The notes: generated by a model from the sequence alone, not told the origin. DNA of 64,000 nucleotides from Cyanophora paradoxa CCMP329 (GCA_004431415.1 QPMI01000519.1:269064-333063); one strand, 5' to 3'. Positions 39,236-52,885 are shown, counted from the first letter of the stretch. Numbers and translations are program-made.

Positions 39236-42200
39236 ATGGCAGCCACGGCGCGAGAAGAGCCGCAGGGCAGTAGTAGCCCTGCGCTACAACCATCCGCGCC
39301 ATCTGCGGCGAGCTCGGCGCTCATTCAGCGAGTAGACTCCTTGCTCTCCACATTGGTGCCGAACAAGTGGACCGAATACAGCAGATTGCACGTGTTCAAC
39401 TATGTCAAGTCGATCCTCGTTCGCGTCTTCCCAAACGTGACGGTGAGCTGCCTGGGTCGCTTTCGTATATGGAGCGCCAAGAGCGCCCGGGCGTGGCGGA
39501 GCTTCTGGACCAGTCGATAGGCCGAATCGCCCCGCGCGGGGCGGGCACGCTAGCCGCGCACCTTGCACGGTCCGCGCACAGGCCTTACGCGGTGCTGCAG
39601 GTCCTGCAGTTCGGCTCCGTGCCGCTGAAGACATATCTGCCTGACGGTGACATCGACGTTGGCTTCTTCGGCCTGCGCCTCGAGGAGGACTGGCCCCTCC
39701 GCCTCAAGAGCGCCATCGAGCGTGACGCGGCCAACCAGCAGAAGCTAGGCCATCCGCTGAAAGATGTAGCGTGCATCTTCGCCGAGGTGTGATTGTTGCC
39801 TCCGAGCACGCGGCCCCGGCGCTCCCATTCGCCGCTCATGACGATCTCTCCGTTGCCTGAGCTCGCCCGCGCAGGTGAAGGTCGTGAAGTGCATCTTGGG
39901 CACGATCATGGTGGACATTAGCTCAAATCAAACGGCCGGTCTCTGCACTTTGTGCTTCTTCGAGGAGGCGAGCCCACCGTCTGCTGAATCTCGCCACTCG
40001 TGCTAACGGTGGCGCGCCGCTTTCCGCTTAGGTCGACCGCCTGATTGACAAAGACCACCTGTTTAAGAGGAGCGTCATATTGATCAAGGCGTGGTGCTAC
40101 TACGAGAGCAGGATACTTGGTTCGCAGATGGGTCTGATTTCGACCTACGCGCTGGAGACACTCGTGCTTTACATTTTCAACCGGTTTAACGATTCTTTGC
40201 ATTATCCTATCGATGTTCGTGCATCGCCCCTCACGTAGAGCCGCTTGCGGCGGGCAACCTCCGCGGTTGCCGATGCTCGTTTGAACGTGCAGGTCCTCTA
40301 TCGTTTCTTGGAGGAATTCAGCCAGTTCGATTGGGAGAAGTACGCGATTTCTATATGGGGCCCGATCGAGATTGGAGCGCTGCGGAACCTGCCTCGTGCG
40401 CCGCACCCCACGCCCCTCGCATCTCTTTCCTTCCTTTTCTGACCGGCGCCCGGGGGCCCGCGCGGCGTCTCAGTGCCGGAGCGGGCGTCGTGGGAGGTTG
40501 CGGAAGGCAAGGAGCCGCCGATCACGTCCAAGTTCATGACGTACATGCGGAGCATCTACACGGACTCGTTCGAGCGCCTCGGGGCCAACCGCCCGCACTA
40601 CAAGCGACCGTCCGCGCCCCGCCCCGCCCCGCCCCGCCGCTCGCGCCGCCGCCGCCGCAGCGCTGACGCCGTGGCGCGCAGGGAGCAGCGGCAGTTCATG
40701 CTCAAGCACATGAACGTGGTGGACCCGCTCGTCCCCCACAACAACCTCGGGCGCTCCGTATCCTTGTCCAACCTCGCGAGGATACGGAGTGCCCTCGGGC
40801 TGGGCCGGCAGCAGCTCGCCTCGGTCCTCGACAAGGCGGCCCCCGAGGCGGCCGCTGCCCTGGACCAGTTCTTCACGTCGACGCATCGTCGGCTCCGAGG
40901 GGACGTCTGGAGCCGCTCGGACCTTGCTGGGATCCACCACCTGTGGAACTACGAGCGGTCCATGCTCTACTCGCTCGCGGTCACGGCCTCGGCCGCTCCC
41001 GCGCACGCCACCGCGACAGCCGCGGCGGCCGCAGCAGCAGCAGCGAACGCGCACATCGCTCGCATCCTGGCCGCCGCCTCTGCGGCGCACCTCCCCGCTC
41101 TTCTTCACCAACAGCAGGCCGCCGCAGCCGCCTACCTCCAGGCCTACGGGACTCTCCCCTCTTCCGCCTCCTCCGCCTCCTCCGCGTCCGCCGCCGCTGC
41201 CGTCCAGCCGGCCGCCCCCGCGCTCCCTTCCCCGTCCTCCCGGGGCGCGGCCGAGGCGGCGCGCGCGGCGGTCCTCTCTGCGATCGACGCGGCGGCGGCG
41301 GCGGCCTCGGGCGAAGGCGAGGCCTCGGGCAAGGGCGCTGGGGGCGAGCAGGCGCACCCGCCCGGCGCCGAGCACGCGCACTGGCACGGGCGCAACGGCG
41401 CCGTCAAGCCCCATCCGCAGCCGGCCTCCCCGCGGCCCGCCCGCGCCCTCCCGCGCCCCTGCCCCCTCCGGCCCCGGCTCCCCGGCGGCGCCTCCTCCTC
41501 CTCGGGCCGTCGCCCCGCCCCTGCCGGTCGTCCCCGCCCCGCCCACGGGCCCGCCCCCGCGCCCCCTCCGAGAGCTCTATCCCCGAAGAGCCGCCCATCC
41601 TCTTCGGCTCCGTGGACCCCGCCGAGCTCGCGAACGTCGTACCCCCTCCCTCCCGCCTCCCCGGCCTCCTCCTCCGCCTCCGGGCCTCCTCCGCTCGCCC
41701 CCGCCTGCGCCCGGCGCGCCGCGACCCCCCACCTCGCCCCGACGGCGGCCCCCGCCGCCCGCCCCAGCGCCGGCGCCGGCGGCGGCGCGAGGACCGGCAC
41801 GTCGTCGCCGGCCTCGCGTGCCTCGGTCACCAGCCCGGGGCTGCAGGGGAGCTCTTCGGGGGAAGGGCCCCCCGAGGCGCGGCTGCCCCCCGCCGCCCAG
41901 CCGAGCGCCCCGTCCCTGTCCATCCACCTCCCCACGCCGCCTCACACCCCCGTCGTGCCCCTGCCCCGCTCCCCCGCCGCCTACCCCCACGGCTGGGAGG
42001 CCGATCCGCTCGCTGCCGCCGCCCGCCTCGCCATAAGGCACGCCCAGCAGCAGGCGGCGCAGCAGCAGCAGCAGCAGCCGGGGATCGTACCCCTGCAGCA
42101 GCCGCACCCCGTGCAGGCGGCGGCCTCCCAGATGCAGCAGGGGTACCTGGAGTACGGCCCCTCGGGGGCGGCGTCGCCCATGCCCCTGCCCTCGCCCTCG

Positions 42201-42826
42201 GCCTCGCCGGCCCCGCTCCCCGCGGCGCCCTCGCCGGTGCCGGCGCTGGCGCAGCAGCCCCTGGCGCCGCTCCTCTCGTCGATGCTGGAGAACATCCAGG
42301 GGCCCTTCACCTCGGCCTCGGGCGGCGCCGAGCGCGCCGACTACCTCGCCTCCGACCTCAAGGCCCGCCCTCTTCCCGCTCCGATCCGCGCCCCCCGCCG
42401 CGCCCCGCTCATCCTCCCTCGCTCGCGCGCGCGCAGGGGCTCCGCCAGAACGTCGAGCACCTGCAGACGATGTTCGCGCGGCGCGAGGGGCCCCCGACCT
42501 CCTCCCCCTCGGGCGGCGGCGGCGGCGGCGGGTACCGCCACGACCGGAGCATGACGCCCCCGCCCAGCGGCGCCCACGCTGGCTACGGAGGCGGCGGCGG
42601 CGGGGGGGGCGGCTACGGACGCGGGGGCGGCAACTACTACAGCCCGCAGGGGCAGTACGCCCGCGGCGGGGGCGATCGCTGGGCCTCGCAGGGCGGCGGC
42701 TCGCGGGGCGGGCCCCGAGGAGGCCAGTGGGGCGACGGCGGCGACGCCCAGGGCGGCTACCGCAGGGTGCCGCCCCAGCAGATGCAGCAGCAGCAGCAAC
42801 AACAACACCAGCAGCAACACCAGCAA

Positions 42827-42871
<45 letters not shown>

Positions 42872-44331
42872 CCGATGCCGCAACCGCTGCAGCCGATGCC
42901 CCAACCCGCCGATCAGCAGCAGCCACAGCAGCAACAGCAGCCTCCGCAGCAGCAGCAGCAGCAGCAAGCGTCGACGACGAAGGAAGGCGCCAAAGAGCCT
43001 CCGCAGCAGCAGCAGCAGCAGCCGGCGCAGGGCCACTCGGCCAAGCAAAAAGGGGGCGCCTCCCCTCGGGGCTCCCTCCCCCTCCGCGCTCCTGGGTACG
43101 GCGTGCAGCAGCTTCAGAGCCCGCCGGGGTACCCGCAGCCGCTGCCGCAGGGGGGGTCGGCTAGGACGTCCCCCGGGCCCTCCCCGCGGCAGGAGGAGGC
43201 GGACTCCGCGGCCGCGCGCCCGGCGCCCGACGACGGCGGGCGCGAGGCGCCGCCCAAGCGCGAGGCGACGCCCCCGCCGGCCGCCCACCCGGCCACCGCC
43301 GCTCGGTCCGCCCCCGCTCCCCTTCAGAGTTTTGTCGCCTCTTACGCAGACCGCGCGGCTCACAGGGCTCTGCTGGCGCCATCTCGCCCGCGTATCGCGC
43401 CGGCCGCGGTGCCGGCGGGTCGGACGGGCGCGGCGGGGGCTCGGCGGGCTGGATCGGGGGCCGCGGGGCGGGGCCAGGGGCAGGGCCAGGCGCGGCGGGC
43501 GCTGCCGCCGACGGGGCTCAGCGGGATGCCGGCCAAGTGGGCGGACGTCAGGGACGGCCCCGTGCGGTGCGCTCTCTCGCTCTCTCTCTCCCTCCCCTCC
43601 CTTCGCGCCCGCCTCACGCCCGCGCCCGCAGCGGCGCCTCGGTGCCCTCGTCGCCCTCGGGACGCCGCGGACGCCGGGGGAGGCCCCCGCGCAGTCCCCC
43701 GCCGGCAGCAGCAGCGCCGCCGCCGACCGCGCCTCGCCCCGCCCGAGTCCTTCGAGGTCTCCATGCTCGACTTCCCGCCCCTGGGGGGGCCCGGGCCCCC
43801 TGCAGGCCCCGCCCCGCCCTCCAACGCCCCCCGCCCCGACCGCCTGGCGGCCCCAGCGCCGCGACGCCCGCCGCGACAGCGGGCCACCGGCCCCGCCCCG
43901 GCGACGCCGGCCGCGCCGCCCGCGGCCCCGAGGAGCCCCGGGAGGGCCGGGAGGCCAGGGAGGGCAAGGAGACGACGGCCAAGTACCGCCCGCCGGCGCT
44001 GCGCGGCGACCGCGAGGGCGGCGGGGCGGCCGGCGCGGCGGCGGCGGCGCCCGCGGGGCCCGCCCCGTCGCCCCGCGGCCCGTCGCCTGGCCCTGCAAGC
44101 CCCCGCCCCTCCCCGGAGCCCGAGCCCTCACCCGCTGCCGCCTCCTCCTCTTCCACCTCGACGCCCGCGGCCCCCGCCCCCACCCCCGCCCCCGCCGCGT
44201 CCCCGTCCCAGCCGGCGCCCCAGCCGCCTTCGAGAGAGGGGTCGGCGTGGGGCCCTCCCCTGGCCGGCGGGGCTGCGGCGCCCGCCGGCCGCGCCCCTAC
44301 CCCCTCGAGGACGTCCCCCGTCCCGCACTAG
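39236..44331 (+). CDS. Pol-beta superfamily nucleotidyltransferase, plant-type PAP/OAS1 substrate-binding-domain family, with long disordered C-terminus
   Basis: FGSVPLKTYLPDGDID, AEVKVVKC...VDIS-NQ-GLCTLCFFEE|VDRLI-KDHLFKRSVILIKAWCYYESRILG...LISTYALETLVLYIFN, VLYRFL-FSQFDW, KHMNVVDPL-NNLGRSVS. The 3' end is approximate. Confidence 0.9.
42782..43021 (+). repeat. Coding CAG/CAA trinucleotide (polyQ) tracts
   Basis: Long cagcag/caacaa runs encoding MQQQQQQQHQQQHQQQQ... Confidence 0.95.
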
Positions 44332-45078
44332 TCACAGCGCTCTGCTACGCAACGCTTTTTCTGGCGACCTTTTTTCAAAAAACCTTTTTCGTGTTTGAAT
44401 GAGCGGTTAGACGGTTAGCGTAGCTCTTAGTACAGTGGACGTAGCTTAGTCACTGATGGGGCAACTTCTGTGGGCGTGTAGTATGTATCACACCGAGACA
44501 GTTCACGTGCACGGGCCCCCGGCGTGCGCATGCATATGCGCACCATGGTCGTCGGGCCGCCTTCGAATTCGAATTCCGTACGCGCGCGTGCACGTGGCGC
44601 GCGCCGGCGTGGATATCGATCGATCCATATCGAGTCGACGTCCGTGCGCGCGTGTGCGCGTAATCATGGCGCACGTGGCCTGTACGTGTGAGCAATTGCG
44701 AGCGCTCAGCGGCTATAGCTTGCATGATCGGATTGCAACGCCGGAACGGCATTGCCGAAAATCCGGGTACGATGCGTTGCATTTTGATCGGAGGCTCGGA
44801 GCGTTGTTCGGGTCTGTTAGCTGTACTGCGGCAGCCGGCCAGCAGGCAGCTCGTATAGCTTTGGAGCGAGCGCGGTGACCTAGCCGTTCGGCGCGGCGCG
44901 GCGCCGGGATCCTCAGTCCGCTGGTCCAATATTAATTGCAATTGCAACTGCAGAAGCATCGCCACGGCGCCGGCGTGCCCTTCGCCCGATAGGCCGCGCA
45001 ATCGGCATAAGTTGCAGCTAGGTACTGTTTTCACCAGTGGTCCAGCTGGGCGGCGTGCTAGCTATAGCGGAATTGGCC

Positions 45079-48000
45079 ATGGCCGCGGCCGCGGCACGGC
45101 GGCCGGCGACTGCTCGGCCGCGCTGCCGAATGCTTGGAAACAGCGGGGGCTGCGCCAGCGCGGCCTCCGCGCCCGTCGCCGCCATGCTCCTCGCTTGCCT
45201 CCTCGCCTCGGCAGCGGCCGCAGGTGCGCCTGCGCCCGCCGCCGCGCGCCGCGCCGCGCCATCGAACAGTGCACTTACAGCGTGACGCAGACCTCGCGCT
45301 GCTGTCGCCCGGTAGCGGCGTGGGGACCATCCCGGTCAGCTCGCCCCCCGTGTCTGGGGCCAGCCTGACCGTGGAAGCGTGGATCTACCTTACCGTGCGC
45401 CGCCCTCGGCTTCGGCTGGGCCCGCGCGATTGCCCGCCAGCTTGACGCCCCGCCGCAGGCGGTCCCCGTTACGGGCTTCCGCCCCTTCCAGGTCTCCGTC
45501 AAAGTGAACAACCAGTACAGCTACACCGTGCGGCCGGGCCCGGCCCCGAGCCGCCTACCCACCGTCTAACCGGCGCTCCGCCTCACACTGGGGCGCGCGC
45601 GCGTGCAGCTCTACACGATATTCGATGGCGGTAGCTCTGCCGGCGAGCTCCGCGTCACCATCGAAGGGGAAGGGAACAACGGCTGGTTCAAGTACGAGGG
45701 CGTCAGCATGACCGGCTGGCCCCTGTGCGCGGCGCTCGCGCCGCCTGCCAGGCTGCCCCGCGCCTGACGACCCCCGCAGGAACACCTGGGTCCACGTCGC
45801 TGCCGCGGTCGGACCAAACGACTTCCTGCAACCGTGGGTGCGCATGCGCCCATCAGATGCCGTTGAAATTAAATCTAAATCCAGAACGCTGAGGGGTCGG
45901 CAGTTGAACGGGACGGAACAAGGCGGCTCGGACCCCGGCTGGGGCCTCAGCTCGAACGAGGCGGTCGCCGTCAGCAACACGACGCTCACGAGCCTCGGCG
46001 TGGGGAAGGCGACCGGCTTCAGGATCGAGTGAGCCTTCGTGTACCCTTGCGGCCGCCCGGCCGGATCCCTCTCACCTCGATCACGCCGCAGCGAGTTTCG
46101 CGTGTGGAAGAGCGTCCGAACCACGGCCCAGATCCAGGCGCGCCCCCCCCCCCCCCTCCCACCCCTCCCCTCCCCCTCTAGCCGGGTACCCCGATTAAAC
46201 CGGGCTGCAGGCGGGGATGTCGGCGAAGGCGGACGGGACCAACGCGAACCTCCTCTACTACTTCACGTTCGACGAGGCGCGCCTTGAGTGCCGAGCGCCG
46301 TACCCCGCGGCCCGCAGCCACGCCCCGCCTCATGCCTCCGCAGGACGCTGTGAGCGGGAACGAGATCACGAACAGCGCCGGAGCCGGGTGCGAGCGGTTC
46401 ACGGTGCTCGGGACCTCCGTGGTGGACGGGGGCAAGAGCGTCTCGGGCTTCACGGGCACGTGCGGGAACACCCCCACGCCCAGCCCTTCCCCCTCCCCCT
46501 CCCCCTCCCCCTCGCCCACCGCCTCCGCCACCCCCTCCCCTATCCCCACCCCAACCCCCGCCCCGGCCCCCGTCCCGGCGACGCCCACGCCCTTGCCGGC
46601 CGCCGCGCCGACCGCCACCCCCGCGCCGGCCTCTTCCGGCGGCGGGGGCGCCACGCCCACCCCGGCGACGACCTCTTCCGGCTCCTCCTCCTCCTCCTCC
46701 GGCGTGACGCCCACGCCGACGCCGTCCCCCAGCTCCAGCCCCGCCGTGCGCTCTGAGACCCCGCGCCCGCCCGCGCCGGCGCCGGCGCCTCAGCGCGGGG
46801 GGCAGGGGGCGGCGGGGGTGGAGTACGCGACGCTGGAGCTCACCTTCGCGACCTCCGCCTGCTCCGCCTTCCTCGCCTCCTTCAGCGCAGACGCCGTCCG
46901 GCCCCTCCCCTCCCGCCCTCTCTCCGCTTCCGCTGTCGCCAATCGAGCTTTCCTCAGTGGCTGAGCGAGGTCGTGGCGAAGTCTTTCCCGGGCAAGTCGG
47001 CCGCCGAGCGCGCCGCAATCGCCCTCCAGGCGCGCCCCGCCCCGCCTCGCCCCCGCCCACCCGATCGGTGTCGACGGCTCTGGCTGCGGGCGTTGGCTCA
47101 CGCGGCGGCTTCCGGGGCCGGCGGGGGCGCAGATGGTGGTGGGGAACCTGCGCTGCGGCTCGGTCATCATCACCCTCACCCTCGTCAGGCGCGCCAGCCA
47201 CCTCACCCTGCGAGGGCGTCCGTCCTAGGCCCAGGTCTGACGGGCCGCGCGCGCAGCCCCTCCTCGGGCTCCGCGAACGGGCGCTCGTACGAGACGCTCT
47301 CCTTCCTTGTCTCCGGCATCCAGGCGCGCCCGCGAGCCTCGGGCCCGCCGCTGGGTCTGACGCGGACGGGGCGGCCGGGGCAGGACGGCGTCAAGGCCGG
47401 CACGACGATCGCCGGCCTCTCCGCCGTCTCCGTCACGCAGGCGCGCGATCGCGAGCCGCCGCCGCCGCCGCCGCTCTGGTCGGCACCGCTCGCAATCGCG
47501 CGCGCGCTGACCGGCAGCGCAACAGATCGCCTCGGGGACAGCCGCGGCGACGGTCGGTGCGTCGGCGCCGCCCCTCTCGCCTCCCGCCCCGGCTTCCCAT
47601 CTCCTGACCGTGGCTGCGCCGCGGCCGGCAGACGCGAGCGGGAAGTTCACGGGGGTGACGCCGTTGACCCCGGGCGGCGGCGCGGGATCCGCCTCCTCCT
47701 CCTCCTCCTCCTCGACGGCGGTCATCGCCGCGGCGGCCGGCGGCGGCGGCGGCGGCGCCATCCTCCTCCTTGGCGGCCTCCTCGCGTTCTACTTTGCCTA
47801 CTGGCGCCGCCGCGGGCGCCGCGTCCGGGTCGACGACGCCAACAGGCCGGTCCGCGCCGCCGATCGCTCTAGAGATCATCCCCCGCTCGCCCTACCTGGC
47901 CTCTCGACGCCCAACGCGCGGGGCGCCCCCGGCCAGTTGACGGGGGAGCGGCCGGGGACGCGGGTGCGGCGGGCGGACACGAAGTCGGCGATCGACGAGG

Positions 48001-49575
48001 GCGCCTTCGACGACGAGAAGGCCGAGTCCAAGGCCAAGGCCTGGGACGCCTTCGTCGTGCGCCCCCGCCCGGCCCCTGCCCCTTTAATCTCCCGGGCCCC
48101 GGCGACCATCAAGCTTGCGGCGCGTCGCGCAGTCGTACTCGCACAAGGACGCGGAGCGCGTCTTCGCGTACGTCGACAGCCTCTCCAAGAAGGGCCTCAA
48201 GATCTGGTGCCTACGCGCGCGCGGCCCGTTTGCGAGGCCTGGGCCCCGGCCCCGGCCCCTGCGCAGCCGGAGCCGACGAGCGCCGCGCGCGCCCCGCAGG
48301 ATCGACCGGGAGCTGGCGACCAAGACGGGCACGCGGTGGATGGAGCAGATCGGGGTGCGCGCGCGAGCGCGCGGCCGCCGGGGCCGGGGCCGGGCTGTGC
48401 CGCGCAGCTCCCCCGGGCCCGGCCCGCCCTCGCGCTCACTCTGGCACGGCGGCGCGCAGCGGGCGATGGAGCGGAGCGAGGTCTTCATCTGCTTCATGAG
48501 CCGCGTGCGCCCCCGCCGCCCTCCCCGCAGCGCTAGCCTCGCCCCCGCCGCCTCGCCCCCGACGACCCGCGCGCGCGCGCGTAGAACTACTTCGCCTCGC
48601 GCAACTGCGACGACGAGCTCCAGGTCCCCTCCCCGCCCCTCCCCTCCCCGCCCCTCCCCGGGCCCCGCCCCGTTGATCGGATATGCGGACGCCCGCGGGG
48701 GCCCCGCGTGCAGTACGCGCACCACATCCTGCGCATCCCCAAGTTCCCCGTCTTCATCGAGGACCCGGCCAAAGTCGACCTCCGCACCGACCACAAGGTG
48801 ACCGGCGGCCCCGGGCCCGAGCCCCGCCGCGGCCTCGCCCCGCTCGCCTTCGATCGGGCGCTGACCGCGGCGCCCCCCGCAGATGATGCTCACGGTGCTG
48901 CTCGCATGCATATGGGCCTCAGATGAGCGCGGCGCTCCGCTCCTGACGGCGCGCGTGCCGCGCCCGCGCAGAGCGTGAACTGGACGGTGCAGGCGAAGGG
49001 GACCCGCGCCGCCATCGCCGACGCATGCGAGAAGCTCGTGCGCTCGCGAGCGCGCGCCCGGCCGGAGGATGGGGGTCCCGAGCTGCCCTGTCCTGTAATT
49101 AGATCTGACCGTCGCGATCGCGATCGCGGCGGGACCCCGCCCTGCCCCCAGGTCGTCGCCATCGCGGAGCAGATCAAGGCGAACAAGGCGGAGCGCGGCT
49201 CGGCCGACCCGGTGCCCCCCCGCCCCGACGCCCCCGCCCCCGCCCCCGATCGCCTCCGGATCCGCGCGAGGTCGGCAGCTCACGCGCGCGGCGCGCCGCC
49301 GTGGGCAGGCCAACGAGGTGGGGCCCTTCGCGGGCGAGGCGCACGGGGCCGTGGCGCTCGCGGCCGGCAAGGGCGACGCCGACGAGGAGGCGGAGGGGGC
49401 GCTGCCGGCCCCGCGGGCCCCCGGCCCGGCCTCGGCGGACCGGCCGCGGAACGCACAGCAGGGCTGGTCGGAGCGGATCGAGCAGGACGAGGAGGCGGTG
49501 CCCCGCCGGCAGGCGAGCCTCCTCCACGGCGAGACGCACGTCGAGGAGCTCGACAGCCACGACGCCAGGGCGTAG
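45079..49575 (+). CDS. Single-pass receptor: signal peptide, LamG/pentraxin (ConA-like) domain, Pro/Thr/Ser stalk, SEA-like segment, TM, cytoplasmic TIR domain
   Basis: Signal MLLACLLASAAAA (ATG 45184; alternative ATG 45079); LamG SLTVEAWIY...TWVHVAA...EFRVWKSVRTTAQIQ...NLLYYFTFDE; stalk 46470-46790; TM AVIAAAAGGGGGGAILLLGGLLAFYFAYW-RRRGRR (47718-47825); TIR WDAFV|SYSHKD...KGLKIW|IDRE...GTRWMEQI...AMERSEVFICFMS...YFASRNCDDELQ|YA...PKFPVFIE. Confidence 0.85.
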
Positions 49576-50396
49576 CGGCCCGGTCCGTCTCCCCGCGTCC
49601 CACGGTTGGCGCTAGCCCCGTTGCGACATGCACTCTCTTCCTCTAGATCGTTACTGTATGCGTAGCCTAGTAGCTCTAGTTTATATAATTAGTAGCTAAC
49701 CGTTGAACTTCAACTTCGCTGTAGTTCAAGCCTTGTAGCCCCACTGTACATGTAGTTCAAGCATGCTTTTCTGCAATTGTTAGTTTGCATTTCAAGATTG
49801 TGCCTCAAGATTGTGTTTTAAGATTGCATTCATGTATTCTTGAAAAGAAAGAATTCGAACTACCCGGCTCCATTGAGAGCCAGCCTGTTCATGCCGCCCC
49901 GACCGTCCGGTACGGTCGGACCCCAGGATCAGCTGCAGATTCTAGATCTTGCATATGCATTGCAACATCGATTCAATGATTGCCAAACTGCCATCGATAT
50001 CGCCGAGTCGATCATGAACTTGATCATGGTACGGTCCGAATTCGAATGTGCACGGGTTCGGCCCCGGCGCCCGCGGCCGCGGGCCCTGCCGCAGTGCGGG
50101 GCCGGGCCGATCCATGGCCAGTCAGCGCCGGGGGCGCCGCGCCGCTGCCAGGCTGATCATGCCATGATGAGCGTGCACTGATGCTGATGCATATGTGGCT
50201 TTGTAGTATGAGCTCGAGAGATTGCTTTTGCACAACATGTACAAAGCTGGACTTGGCGCACACGTATACACGAGTACTTGGTGCACGTGGTGACTCAAAG
50301 AGAGATGCATAGGGCACCGCAGTGGGGGCGGTCGCGGGGCGCGCGGGGAAAGGCGGAGTAAAAGAGCGGGGGTGGCGGCGGGGGCCGGGCCGGGGC

Positions 50397-52885
50397 TCAG
50401 GCGGGCCCGGGGCGGGGCGGGGAGGACTGCTGGAGGGCCATGCGGAGGGTGCGGGGCCCGTCGGCCCCCGCCACCTCCACCTCCACCTGCGCCCCGCCCC
50501 GCCCGTCGACTCCCCCCCGAGCCCCAGCGGCGCGGCGCGCGGGGCGGCGGGGGGCGCGCCTTGTCCCCCACCGAGTGCTTCTCGAGGACCTTGTAGAGCT
50601 CGTTCGCCTGCGCTCAGATCAGACCAGATCAGATCGGATCGGATCGGATCAGCTCAGATCGAGCGGGGTCGGGTCAGGCGGGCGGGACGCACAGTGGCGA
50701 CCTTGACGCCGTCGACGCGCACGACGACGTCGCCCAGCGCCACGCCCCCGCCACCCTCCTCGCCCCGCCCGCCCCTCGCCCCCGCCCCGCCACCCGAGGG
50801 CGGGGCGCGCGCACCGGCGGGTGCCGCGCATGCCGGCCCGCTCGGCCTCGCTGCCGCGCGGCACGTCGATGACGAGGATGCCTGCGTGCGGCGCCTCGCT
50901 CGGCTGCGGGCACGCGGGGGCGCGGGTGCGTGGTCGTGCTGACCGTCGATGCCGAGGGCGCGGGCCTGGCGGTCCTCGGCGACGTACACCCCCAGCGTCG
51001 GCCGGATCACCCGCCCGTACTTCACCTGAGGGGGGCGGGGGGTGAGCGCGGGGCGGGCGGGGCGGCGGGGCGGGGCGCGGGGCACGCGCGATGGAGGAGA
51101 CGACGTCGGCGACGGTGTCGACGGGGATGGCGAACCCGACCCCCGCCGACGCCCCCGACGCTGCGAGCCCCGCCCAGGAGGCCTCGCCCCCGCAGCGCCG
51201 GAGGGCGGGGCGGGGATAAAGGTGCGCGCGCACGGGAGTAGATGGCGGTGTTGATGCCGATGAGGCGGCCCTGGCTGTCCAGCAGCACGCCCCCCGAGTT
51301 CCCCGGGTTGATCGCCGCGTCTGCCCCCGCCGCCCCCCGGCCCACTTGAGCTCGAGGCCCAAGGCGGCGCGGGGCGCAGGGGGGGAGCGCATGAGGAGGC
51401 GCACCCGTCTGGATGACGCCCTGGATGGGGCGCCCCCCCACGGAGACGATCTCCCGCCCCAGCCCGCTGATCACCCCCATCTGGCCCCAGAGCGTCGGGC
51501 GCGGCGGGGCGAGACGGGGCGGGGCCGGGGGGATGAGAAAGGGGGCCCCGCACGGTGAGGGTGTGGTCGAGGCCGAAGGGGTTGCCGATGGCGTAGACGC
51601 GCTGCCCGACGAGCAGGTTGTCCGAGCGCCCCACCGGCACCGCCTTCAGCGCCCTCTCCGGCGCCTCGATCGAGAGCACCGCCACGTCCTGCCCCCACCC
51701 CTCAGCCCCGGCCCCGCGGCCCGGGGGTACACGGCCTGCGGGGAGGGGGGGTACGCGGGCCTTGTCCTGGTCGAAGCCGACGAGCTGCGCGTCGTACGTG
51801 TTCTGGTCCGACAGCGTCACCTTCGCCTCGTCCGCCCCCTGCCCCCGCCCCCCTCAGAGGGGTACCGCGCCGGCGGCCCCCGCGCCGGGGGTACCTTGAT
51901 GACGTGGAAGCTGACGGCGCGGGGGGCGAGGCTTCAGTCGGGGAGGGCGACGCCGGCGGGGGAGGGCGCAGCGCACTTGGTGACGATGAACTTGCGGCCG
52001 CCCTCCTCGTAGACGAAGCCCGAGCCCGTGCCCTGCGGGCGCGGGGGCCTCGGCGGGGGTACGGAGAAGAACTCACGGGGGGGTACGGGGGTGCGGGAGC
52101 GGGGGACCTGGGGGATCTCGAGGACGTTGAGGGAGAAGGCGTCGCGCTGGACGGAGAGCGAGGCGATGAACACGACGCTCTCCGAGGACCGCCGGAAGAG
52201 CTCCACCGTCGCCCGCTGCCCCCGCCCCCCGCGTCGACCTCGCCCGCCGGCGCGGCGCGCGGGGGTGCGGGCGGGAGCGGGGGGCACCTCCTCGGCGTCG
52301 AGGTCCTTGCGGGAGGCGGCGGGGTCGGCCTGCGGGACGAAGCCGACGAGCATGGGCCGCTCCGGGAGCTCCACCTCGGGCCACTCGCCGGCCGCCTCCC
52401 GCATCGCCGCCTCCGCCTCGTGCTGCCGCGAGTCCGCCACCGCCGCCGGCAGCCACGGCTCCGCCGGCTCGGCCGCCAGCGGCGCCGCGTCTAGAACCGT
52501 GCAGGACGCGCCCAGCGCCGCCGCCGCCAGCGCCGCCAGCACTGCGCGACCCCTCCGCTTCTCCTTGTCCGCTCCATCCTTCGCCGATGAGGGCCTCCGC
52601 TCGCCGGCGCCGCGAGCTTCGTGCGATGATCTGGCCACGGAACCGGCGATCTGGTCAGGTCGATCGGGCAGCGATCGGGGCGTATGGTACATCGGCGCAC
52701 TCGCAGAAGAAGCCCACTCGCCGCTGGAGCGGTTCCGCCGCTCGGCGCCTGCACCCGCGCAGACCGAAATTCCTGGAGTCTTCGACCGGCGCGCCGGGGG
52801 TCGCCGGTGCAAGTAATGAGCAAGCCCTGTGCTCGGGCCGCCGGAGAGAGGTCGCTGGGGCGGCAGGAACCGCGCTGACGAACAT
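50397..52885 (-). CDS. DegP/HtrA serine protease, Deg1-like, with bipartite plastid/thylakoid presequence and PDZ domain
   Basis: [16 protein letters not shown]...[12 protein letters not shown]|GTGSGFV...IVTN|FHVI (His), VGFDQDK|DVAVL (Asp), [31 protein letters not shown]...PIQGVIQT|[11 protein letters not shown] (Ser), [27 protein letters not shown]...LGDVV; TGA at 50397-50399. Confidence 0.93.
50616..50660 (+). repeat. Intronic (RGATC)n pentanucleotide repeat
   Basis: agatcagaccagatcagatcggatcggatcggatcagctcagatc inside a Deg intron. Confidence 0.8.

Follow-up and report, generated by a model that had tools for sequence, protein, structure and literature searches.

Single-pass receptors with a cytosolic TIR domain are a hallmark of animal innate immunity. 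In animal Toll-like and interleukin-1 receptors (TLR/IL-1R), as in Hydra TRR-2, an ectodomain is followed by one transmembrane helix (TM) and a C-terminal cytosolic TIR, and the TLR/IL-1R ectodomain is built of leucine-rich repeats (LRR) or immunoglobulin (Ig) domains. Cytosolic TIR proteins that process nicotinamide adenine dinucleotide (NAD) and have solved structures include AbTir, SARM1, the plant proteins RUN1 and RPP1, and Cat1, which is CRISPR-associated and cleaves NAD. A Trp four residues before the catalytic Glu (W...E) is typical of the active sites of SARM1, AbTir, plant TIRs and Cat1. A TM-tethered TIR of a protist is represented by Dictyostelium TirC, which derives from bacterial TIRs and has demonstrated NADase activity; its activation by release, possibly through cleavage, or by clustering has been proposed (PMC13142454).

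Here we describe a gene at positions 45079-49575 on the + strand of a 64,000-nt stretch of DNA from the glaucophyte Cyanophora paradoxa CCMP329 (GCA_004431415.1 QPMI01000519.1:269064-333063), the whole of which is called the window. The gene is real and expressed. Its product, the window protein, has an ectodomain, a TM and a cytosolic TIR encoded by a single transcript, a Toll/IL-1R-like layout already recognized in a preliminary description made from the sequence alone. Topology and TIR fold are the same as in the animal receptors and TRR-2, but the ectodomain is of neither LRR nor Ig type and the TIR belongs to a different clade. Unlike Cat1, AbTir, SARM1 and RUN1/RPP1, the window protein is receptor-tethered and carries Asn in place of the Trp. 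It shares with TirC the tethering of a protist TIR by one helix, whereas TirC has an N-terminal anchor only, lacks an ectodomain and belongs to another TIR clade (TIR-STING-like) (PMC13142454). The chances are about even, in our judgement, that the window protein is a type-I single-pass glaucophyte receptor in which clustering or loss of the ectodomain assembles TIRs that process NAD+ and/or recruit paralogous TIRs.

Gene structure, topology and ectodomain

The gene comprises 26 exons between an ATG at 45079, which is the first ATG after an in-frame stop, and the stop codon at 49573-49575. The coding sequence of 2544 nt encodes 847 amino acids (aa) with a single terminal stop. The limits given in the preliminary description coincide exactly with this RNA-supported model. 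The GC content of the gene region is 72-79%, dropping to ~52% past 49500, and no long bacterial-type open reading frame was found in the gene region. The peptide pieces quoted in the preliminary description are spread over all three + frames, as expected of a eukaryotic gene with many short introns. A second gene copy within the window was considered and rejected.

Seven RNA-like runs from one organism and two studies contained ~0.41-0.45 of the sampled words, and older runs up to 0.74. Contigs of runs X1, X2, X3 and X9 were aligned to 44800-49800. Thirteen GT..AG joints, or 15 by another tally, were identical in the three runs X1-X3, which represent two studies, and missing from X9, which was colinear with the genome, indicating that X1-X3 are cDNA-derived and X9 is DNA. 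The 5' untranslated region (UTR) was joined to exons 1-9 (up to 46442) in X1 record 1 and X3 records 10 and 11, whereby the LamG-like exons and the stalk exon are connected on one contig. The stalk (46593-46745), the TM exon and the TIR exons were connected on another (X1 record 3 and X3 record 12, 1223-1224 nt), which overlaps with X1 record 4, a contig that leads through the final three exons into the 3' UTR. The spliced contigs and a frame open over all 26 exons thus back the earlier proposal of one transcript for ectodomain, TM and TIR.

Introns outside the directly shown joints were placed by contig-length arithmetic. X3 record 11 demands 110 spliced letters between 46028 and 46342, which are provided by exons 46092-46137 and 46211-46276 when shared AG/CAG ends are allowed for. 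X1 record 3 demands 591 exonic letters between 46746 and 47849, exactly the number in the final model; an earlier exon model with 726 letters in this interval was rejected on that account, and the excess was solved by in-frame introns at 46746-46805 and 47557-47631. The exon junctions of the juxtamembrane module were independently backed by colinearity with P0152, a Cyanophora relative introduced below.

Six of the 25 introns carry GC donors (46138, 46277, 47030, 47189, 47324 and 47441), each reading CAG-GCGCGC across the exon-intron border, and the GT donors mostly read GTGCGC. Support for two of the six comes from contig arithmetic, and for the other four from the exact exon-length sum together with colinearity with P0152. 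GC-AG introns make up ~1% in most eukaryotes, and their share in the window gene is far higher.

Of the signal peptide claimed previously, a hydrophobic N-terminal leader was recovered by hydrophobicity. The mucin-like stalk, 74% of which is Pro, Ser or Thr, and the single TM followed by the Arg-rich stop-transfer RRRGRR were both present as described. By the positive-inside rule the TIR is cytosolic, which makes the product a type-I membrane protein; a single TM and a C-terminal cytosolic TIR, the arrangement by which TLR-type receptors are recognized, were found. The stalk is presumably O-glycosylated.

The head of the ectodomain was compared with a language-model atlas, in which the LamG-like region matched clusters of Laminin_G_3 (0.84), pentraxin plus Laminin_G_3 (0.83 and 0.82) and Laminin_G_1/2 (0.78). 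These Laminin/pentraxin clusters stood at ranks 2, 3, 10 and 30 and below the 0.9 reliability mark, and the top-ranked cluster was unrelated. The segments SLTVEAWIYL, WVHVAA and GFRIDEFRVW..R....I resemble the consensus of the LamG family. On this resemblance, the region of aa 50-221 probably folds as a ConA-like jelly-roll, and the LamG-like head is the probable ligand-binding domain. The pentraxin signature is H-x-C-x-S/T-W-x-S/T. Since aa 49-221 contain no Cys, a pentraxin proper was ruled out and the pentraxin label of the preliminary description was dropped. No LRR pattern was seen in the translated ectodomain and no LRR match in exon-wise Pfam searches, in agreement with the earlier contrast to the LRR ectodomains of animal TLRs. 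The adjoining aa 222-285 (46211-46469; LLYYFTFDE...SGNEITNSAG...) resemble the N-terminal strands of Laminin_G_3, which are seemingly missing from the N-terminus of the first domain; this segment may stem from a circular permutation or belong to a second domain that is truncated.

The juxtamembrane module between stalk and TM may be SEA-like. The string VVGNLRCGSVIITL, on which the SEA-like segment had been proposed, is located in exon 12. The sequence CG-SVIITL of the window protein, which reads CG-SVIVPV in P0001/P0152, resembles the SEA autoproteolysis motif G-SVVV, and the predicted strand-helix order of the module is also reminiscent of SEA. When the atlas was queried with this region, a SEA cluster was placed at rank 6 (0.84), and 7 of 10 named matches fell in one clan. 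With phmmer, the LamG-like, SEA-like and tail parts matched P0001/P0152 only among the proteins gathered in this analysis.

TIR domain and its relatives

A search with the TM/exon-17 read-through returned P0001 (EukProt EP00741 Cyanophora paradoxa tig00020693_g13027.t1), of which P0152 is isoform.t2. The window TIR is 83.7% identical to that of P0001 by local alignment, and P0001 matches Pfam TIR_2 (PF13676) at 1.6e-14 (54.9 bits vs a cut-off of 28). An exon-by-exon Pfam search with 20 pieces of the window gene gave nothing relevant, each exon on its own being too short. When P0001 served as query in an exhaustive search, 1629 relatives were obtained. In an alignment of 81 TIR segments from Cyanophora and bacterial members, all 81 of which match TIR_2, one S and one E never vary and another 15 positions show conservation of at least 90%; the window protein keeps all 17 of these residues. 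The SRNCDDELQYA motif noted previously is present and spans the RNA-confirmed exon 21/22 junction.

AlphaFold (AF2) prediction of the TIR from a single sequence was unusable (predicted local distance difference test, pLDDT, 42) and was replaced by a run with the 81-sequence alignment, which modelled P0001:236-400 at pLDDT 86.9. Foldseek gave this model a probability of 1.00 to RUN1, SNC1, TLR1 and SARM1. By VIA, Z was 14-17 against solved TIRs over ~125-142 residues (Hydra TRR-2, 16.8; RPV1, 16.4; AbTir, 15.9; RUN1, 15.9; MyD88, 15.4; SARM1, 15.2; TLR15, 15.2). The fold common with Cat1, AbTir, SARM1 and RUN1/RPP1 scored Z 14.5-16.4, with the alpha-C catalytic Glu aligned. The Pfam match and the TIR fold of P0001 establish TIR family and fold for an 84%-identical proxy of the window TIR, and the TIR_2-type domain of the preliminary description holds by way of this proxy. 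The lack of a predicted TIR fold had been named beforehand as a possible refutation; on the proxy, the fold was predicted. A two-copy TIR complex prediction, in which the alignment was not used, scored 0.00 and speaks neither for nor against self-association.

Within the TIR, a 12-nt microexon accounts for additional letters in the RNA contigs between 48801 and 48971, and its product is conserved as MML(A/T)S in Cyanophora paralogues. The EukProt model of P0001 reads 'AR-A' at the microexon site and carries an additional RAPA where exons 18 and 19 meet, deviations indicating that this annotation is probably mis-spliced and truncated at its N-terminus.

In a maximum-likelihood tree, the window TIR and P0001 are sisters (97/77) within a 16-member clade (100/100), 11 members of which are named Cyanophora proteins. 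The Cyanophora clade is set apart from a cluster of sequences of metagenomic or bacterial origin that includes P0073. Going by the named part of the top matches from 1.84 billion representatives, among which no animal protein was looked up, the nearest relatives are Cyanophora proteins, then bacterial ones, and the window TIR does not fall in the animal TLR/IL-1R clade. A TIR of a Cyanophora-specific clade, with bacterial proteins as its nearest outside relatives, bears out the independent assembly proposed in the preliminary description. The annotated protein of the window itself did not figure in the top 150 of the exhaustive search of representatives. It was likewise absent, within the length limits of the collection, from the results of searches with the TM/exon-17 read-through, the TIR of the relative and the SEA-like part of the relative, which returned only P0001/P0152 and one Clostridia LRR-TIR.

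The product of tig00020693_g13027 has the juxtamembrane module, TM, TIR and C-terminal GW..RI.QDEEAV motif in common with the window protein. The module is 68% identical and colinear, and the TM with its WRRR stop-transfer is near-identical. It differs in a longer juxtamembrane linker and in the tail, where the motif GW(S/A)(E/D)RI(E/L)QDEEAV, preceded by RPR(N/D)A, occurs twice in P0001 (aa 455-467 and 498-510) and once in the window protein. This motif of the window protein may be a docking or sorting signal. The annotated models of tig00020693_g13027 are without leader, LamG-like part or microexon and are probably incomplete; the gene may be a paralogue of the window gene or, should the window stem from another strain, a diverged orthologue. 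These two are the only known members with the SEA-like-TM-TIR form. The other Cyanophora paralogues (P0003-P0026, other loci) have two TIRs with beta-helix/NosD, BBS1-SAM-TIR, RING-SAM-TIR-IBR, LRR-SAM-TIR or myosin-LRR-TIR architectures, and all retain NC.DE. The same TIR on very different architectures indicates a lineage-specific expansion with domain shuffling.

The closest non-Cyanophora relatives form a bacterial TIR_2 subfamily (S.NC.DEL.YA) that includes P0073 and P0002, the latter an LRR-TIR from a metagenome-assembled genome of Clostridia. TIR identity to them is 30-45%, and all 17 conserved positions are shared, including Asn-Cys..Glu. They differ from the window protein in that the TIR is mostly N-terminal, most of them are cytosolic or bear Sel1 or LRR modules, and the DPGTEW BB-loop is kept. 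We know of no characterised member of this subfamily. P0073, the closest bacterial relative, has two TIR_2 domains and is encoded on a 120-kb contig (JAZQCU010000051.1, GCA_045546455.1) between FtsH and other TIR-Sel1 genes; the TIR_2-Sel1 genes that follow it are two in a row, forming a small tandem TIR cluster. In the literature, no description was found of Cyanophora or glaucophyte TIR proteins, nor of LamG-TM-TIR, and Cyanophora is not named in those supplements to the eukaryotic TIR atlas to which the search extended.

Enzyme, scaffold or surface sensor

Glu683 is invariant across the 81 relatives, lies in helix 87-100 of the P0001 model (alpha-C) and aligns with DEL of Cat1 and YEL of TLR1/6. 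Among solved structures, the Cat1 TIR gives the best profile match (3e-15). The Glu termed intact and catalytic in the preliminary description is thus kept, but its value as an enzyme marker was lost, since TLR1, TLR2, TLR6 and TLR15 carry Glu at the same position; the residue cannot separate enzyme from scaffold. A Glu at the catalytic position is necessary, not sufficient, for an NAD-processing TIR. Its invariance from bacteria to Cyanophora fits an enzyme and argues for catalysis, short of proof. Most eukaryotic TIRs are reported to retain this Glu, and the TLR4 TIR to produce cyclic ADP-ribose (cADPR), by which the earlier contrast with animal TLRs as users of scaffold TIRs has become dated (bioRxiv 10.64898/2026.04.20.719644, 2026 preprint).

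In the receptor reading, a ligand would bind the ectodomain and cluster the receptor, or the ectodomain would be lost at the SEA-like module, and the cytosolic TIRs would thereby be brought together. The assembled TIRs would then signal, the likeliest route being conversion of NAD+ to ADP-ribose-type products via the invariant Glu683. They may also seed assemblies that take in the numerous cytosolic TIR paralogues of the clade. That the window protein binds glycans, cleaves NAD+ or acts in immunity is pure inference.

Several observations weigh against this reading. The TIR is evidenced through a relative and a local alignment rather than through database matches of the window's own spliced protein. 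Profile scores to TLR1, TLR2, TLR6 and TLR15, which share the Glu, are ~1e-13 and nearly as good as that to Cat1, and the structural matches favour neither enzyme nor scaffold TIRs. TLR2 is reported to be inactive despite its Glu (bioRxiv 10.64898/2026.04.20.719644). In the window protein, Asn679 aligns to the Trp at -4 from the Glu in Cat1 (SDWCWDEL) and TLR6 (SEWCHYEL); Asn is found at this position in nearly the whole TIR subfamily (N88, at least 90% conserved among the 81). The BB-loop Pro-Gly of the bacterial members is altered to ATKTG with a 2-residue insert. On the extracellular side, exon-wise Pfam and PDB sequence searches with the LamG-like exons (19-41 aa each) were blank, the PDB matches amounting to noise (eL39, 53BP1 and a sialidase, with E ~1), and the LamG/ConA-like call of the preliminary description is accordingly left with the atlas lead and no formal domain match. 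The SEA-like segment fared similarly: the SEA profile (PF01390) had no Pfam match in P0152:1-260 at E up to 10, and a PDB sequence search with the relative was blank. Finally, ~60 nt within the SP repeat at 46473-46592 are the sole part of the gene that no listed RNA contig bridges.

This last gap is where the ectodomain and the TM-TIR part could be separate genes, with separate transcripts abutting inside the repeat. No listed RNA contig crosses 46500-46560, and contigs alone are no proof of one transcript, but we consider such an artefact very improbable. The repeat sits in one unbroken open exon (46344-46745) without a stop, contigs reach into it from either side, depth is maintained over its length, the frame is open over all 26 exons, and a transcript starting in the repeat would carry the TM but no leader. 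As for the TIR, the receptor might itself be an enzyme. Once a glycan or some other ligand docks onto the LamG-like head, or force or a protease strips off the ectodomain at a SEA-like module that cleaves itself, the cytosolic TIRs would assemble into an active NAD-processing enzyme, whose product, a nucleotide second messenger, would be read by other proteins of the Cyanophora TIR clade. The result would be an independently evolved 'Toll receptor' of bacterial derivation with the TIR as catalytic output instead of adaptor. We hold this version only tentatively, and exactly as tentatively the one in which the TIR is a scaffold only, the clustered receptor recruiting one or more of the Cyanophora TIR paralogues in the cytosol (among them SAM-TIR, LRR-SAM-TIR and RING-SAM-TIR-IBR) through TIR-TIR contacts in the manner of TLR-MyD88, with the chemistry downstream. 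Ready partners for a scaffold exist in at least 16 closely related TIRs on varied cytosolic architectures, the family is nearly as near to the TIRs of TLR1/6/15 and MyD88 as to Cat1 by profile, and the lost Trp and altered BB-loop point the same way. Conservation of the Glu and 16 other positions into bacterial members, on the other hand, would be unexpected for a pure adaptor surface, and the scaffold and enzyme roles are compatible.

A non-immune function was also weighed, in which the product is a mucin-type surface, adhesion or mechanosensing protein made of LamG, glycosylated stalk and SEA-like module, and its TIR lets damage at the surface, shedding or contact between cells act on NAD metabolism or cell death. 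The stalk and the membrane-adjacent CGSVII resemble mucin SEA modules that part under force, the transcripts are found in RNA runs of two studies, and a cleavage-released TM-tethered TIR NADase has been proposed in Dictyostelium TirC (PMC13142454). Against it stands the SEA module, unsupported by Pfam or PDB sequence searches, and we judge this function less probable than either of the two versions above.

In this glaucophyte, the layout of the animal receptors was built independently, with a TIR from a bacterial-type clade and an ectodomain other than LRR. The gene also adds to the evidence that one Cyanophora TIR clade was shuffled onto many architectures, in a genome where TIR fusions are frequent. 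If the TIR is active, the protein would offer a compact system for studying how a TIR enzyme is switched across a membrane by an extracellular signal, a question made topical by the report of cADPR production by the TLR4 TIR.

Feature coordinates and neighbouring DNA

Table 1. Features of the window gene, with positions counted from the first letter of the window.
Feature	Position	Strand	Evidence
5' UTR	44800..45078	+	RNA contigs colinear from 44800/44803 to 45218; transcript start lies upstream of 44800
Exon 1: ATG and leader of aa 1-48, with hydrophobic h-region at aa 33-48	45079..45223	+	RNA contigs, model
Exons 2-7: LamG/ConA-like candidate, aa 50-221	45291-45394, 45459-45527, 45609-45724, 45780-45837, 45904-46028, 46092-46137	+	Joints from RNA contigs; domain by atlas lead and motif resemblance
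Exon 8 and start of exon 9: aa 222-285	46211-46276, 46344..46469	+	Model; length of X3 record 11
Rest of exon 9 (exon 46344-46745): mucin-like stalk, aa 286-377	46470..46745	+	Composition; contains SP repeat 46473-46592
Exons 10-15: SEA-like candidate juxtamembrane module, aa 378-501	46806-46895, 46958-47029, 47133-47188, 47257-47323, 47384-47440, 47526-47556	+	Exon sum equals RNA contig; colinear with P0152
Codons G440-S441 of CGSVIITL (aa 439-446)	47157..47162	+	Sequence
Exon 16: Ser/Gly linker, TM helix aa 531-559 (47718-47804), RRRGRR stop-transfer (47805-47822)	47632..47849	+	Sequence
Exon 17, first part: cytosolic juxtamembrane linker, aa 575-608	47937..48038	+	RNA contigs, model
TIR domain, aa ~609-759, exons 17-25	to 48056, 48133-48206, 48300-48354, 48460-48504, 48585-48623, 48714-48797, 48883-48894, 48972-49037, 49152-49211 (whole 48039..49211)	+	All joints RNA-supported
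Codon of E683, candidate catalytic Glu in NCDDEL, helix alpha-C	48615..48617	+	Alignment
12-nt microexon, encodes MMLT	48883..48894	+	RNA contig letters; CAG and GT sites on either side
Exon 26: acidic C-terminal tail (aa 760-847) and stop; GWSERIEQDEEAV motif at 49462-49500	49309..49575	+	RNA contigs, model
3' UTR	49576..49800, extends past 49800	+	RNA contigs colinear 49308-49800; GC ~52%

Upstream of the gene, the + strand at 40943-44398 has a GC content of 74-83% and long Gln-, Gly- and Pro/Arg-rich open frames, with poly-Q near 42700-42900; a Pfam search of 42500-43300 gave no match. Downstream, on the - strand at 50650-51820 and possibly to ~53600, lies a multi-exon gene with pieces of a Deg/HtrA-like serine protease, which match Trypsin_2 at 9.4e-08 and 1.3e-05 and contain a GNSGG motif.

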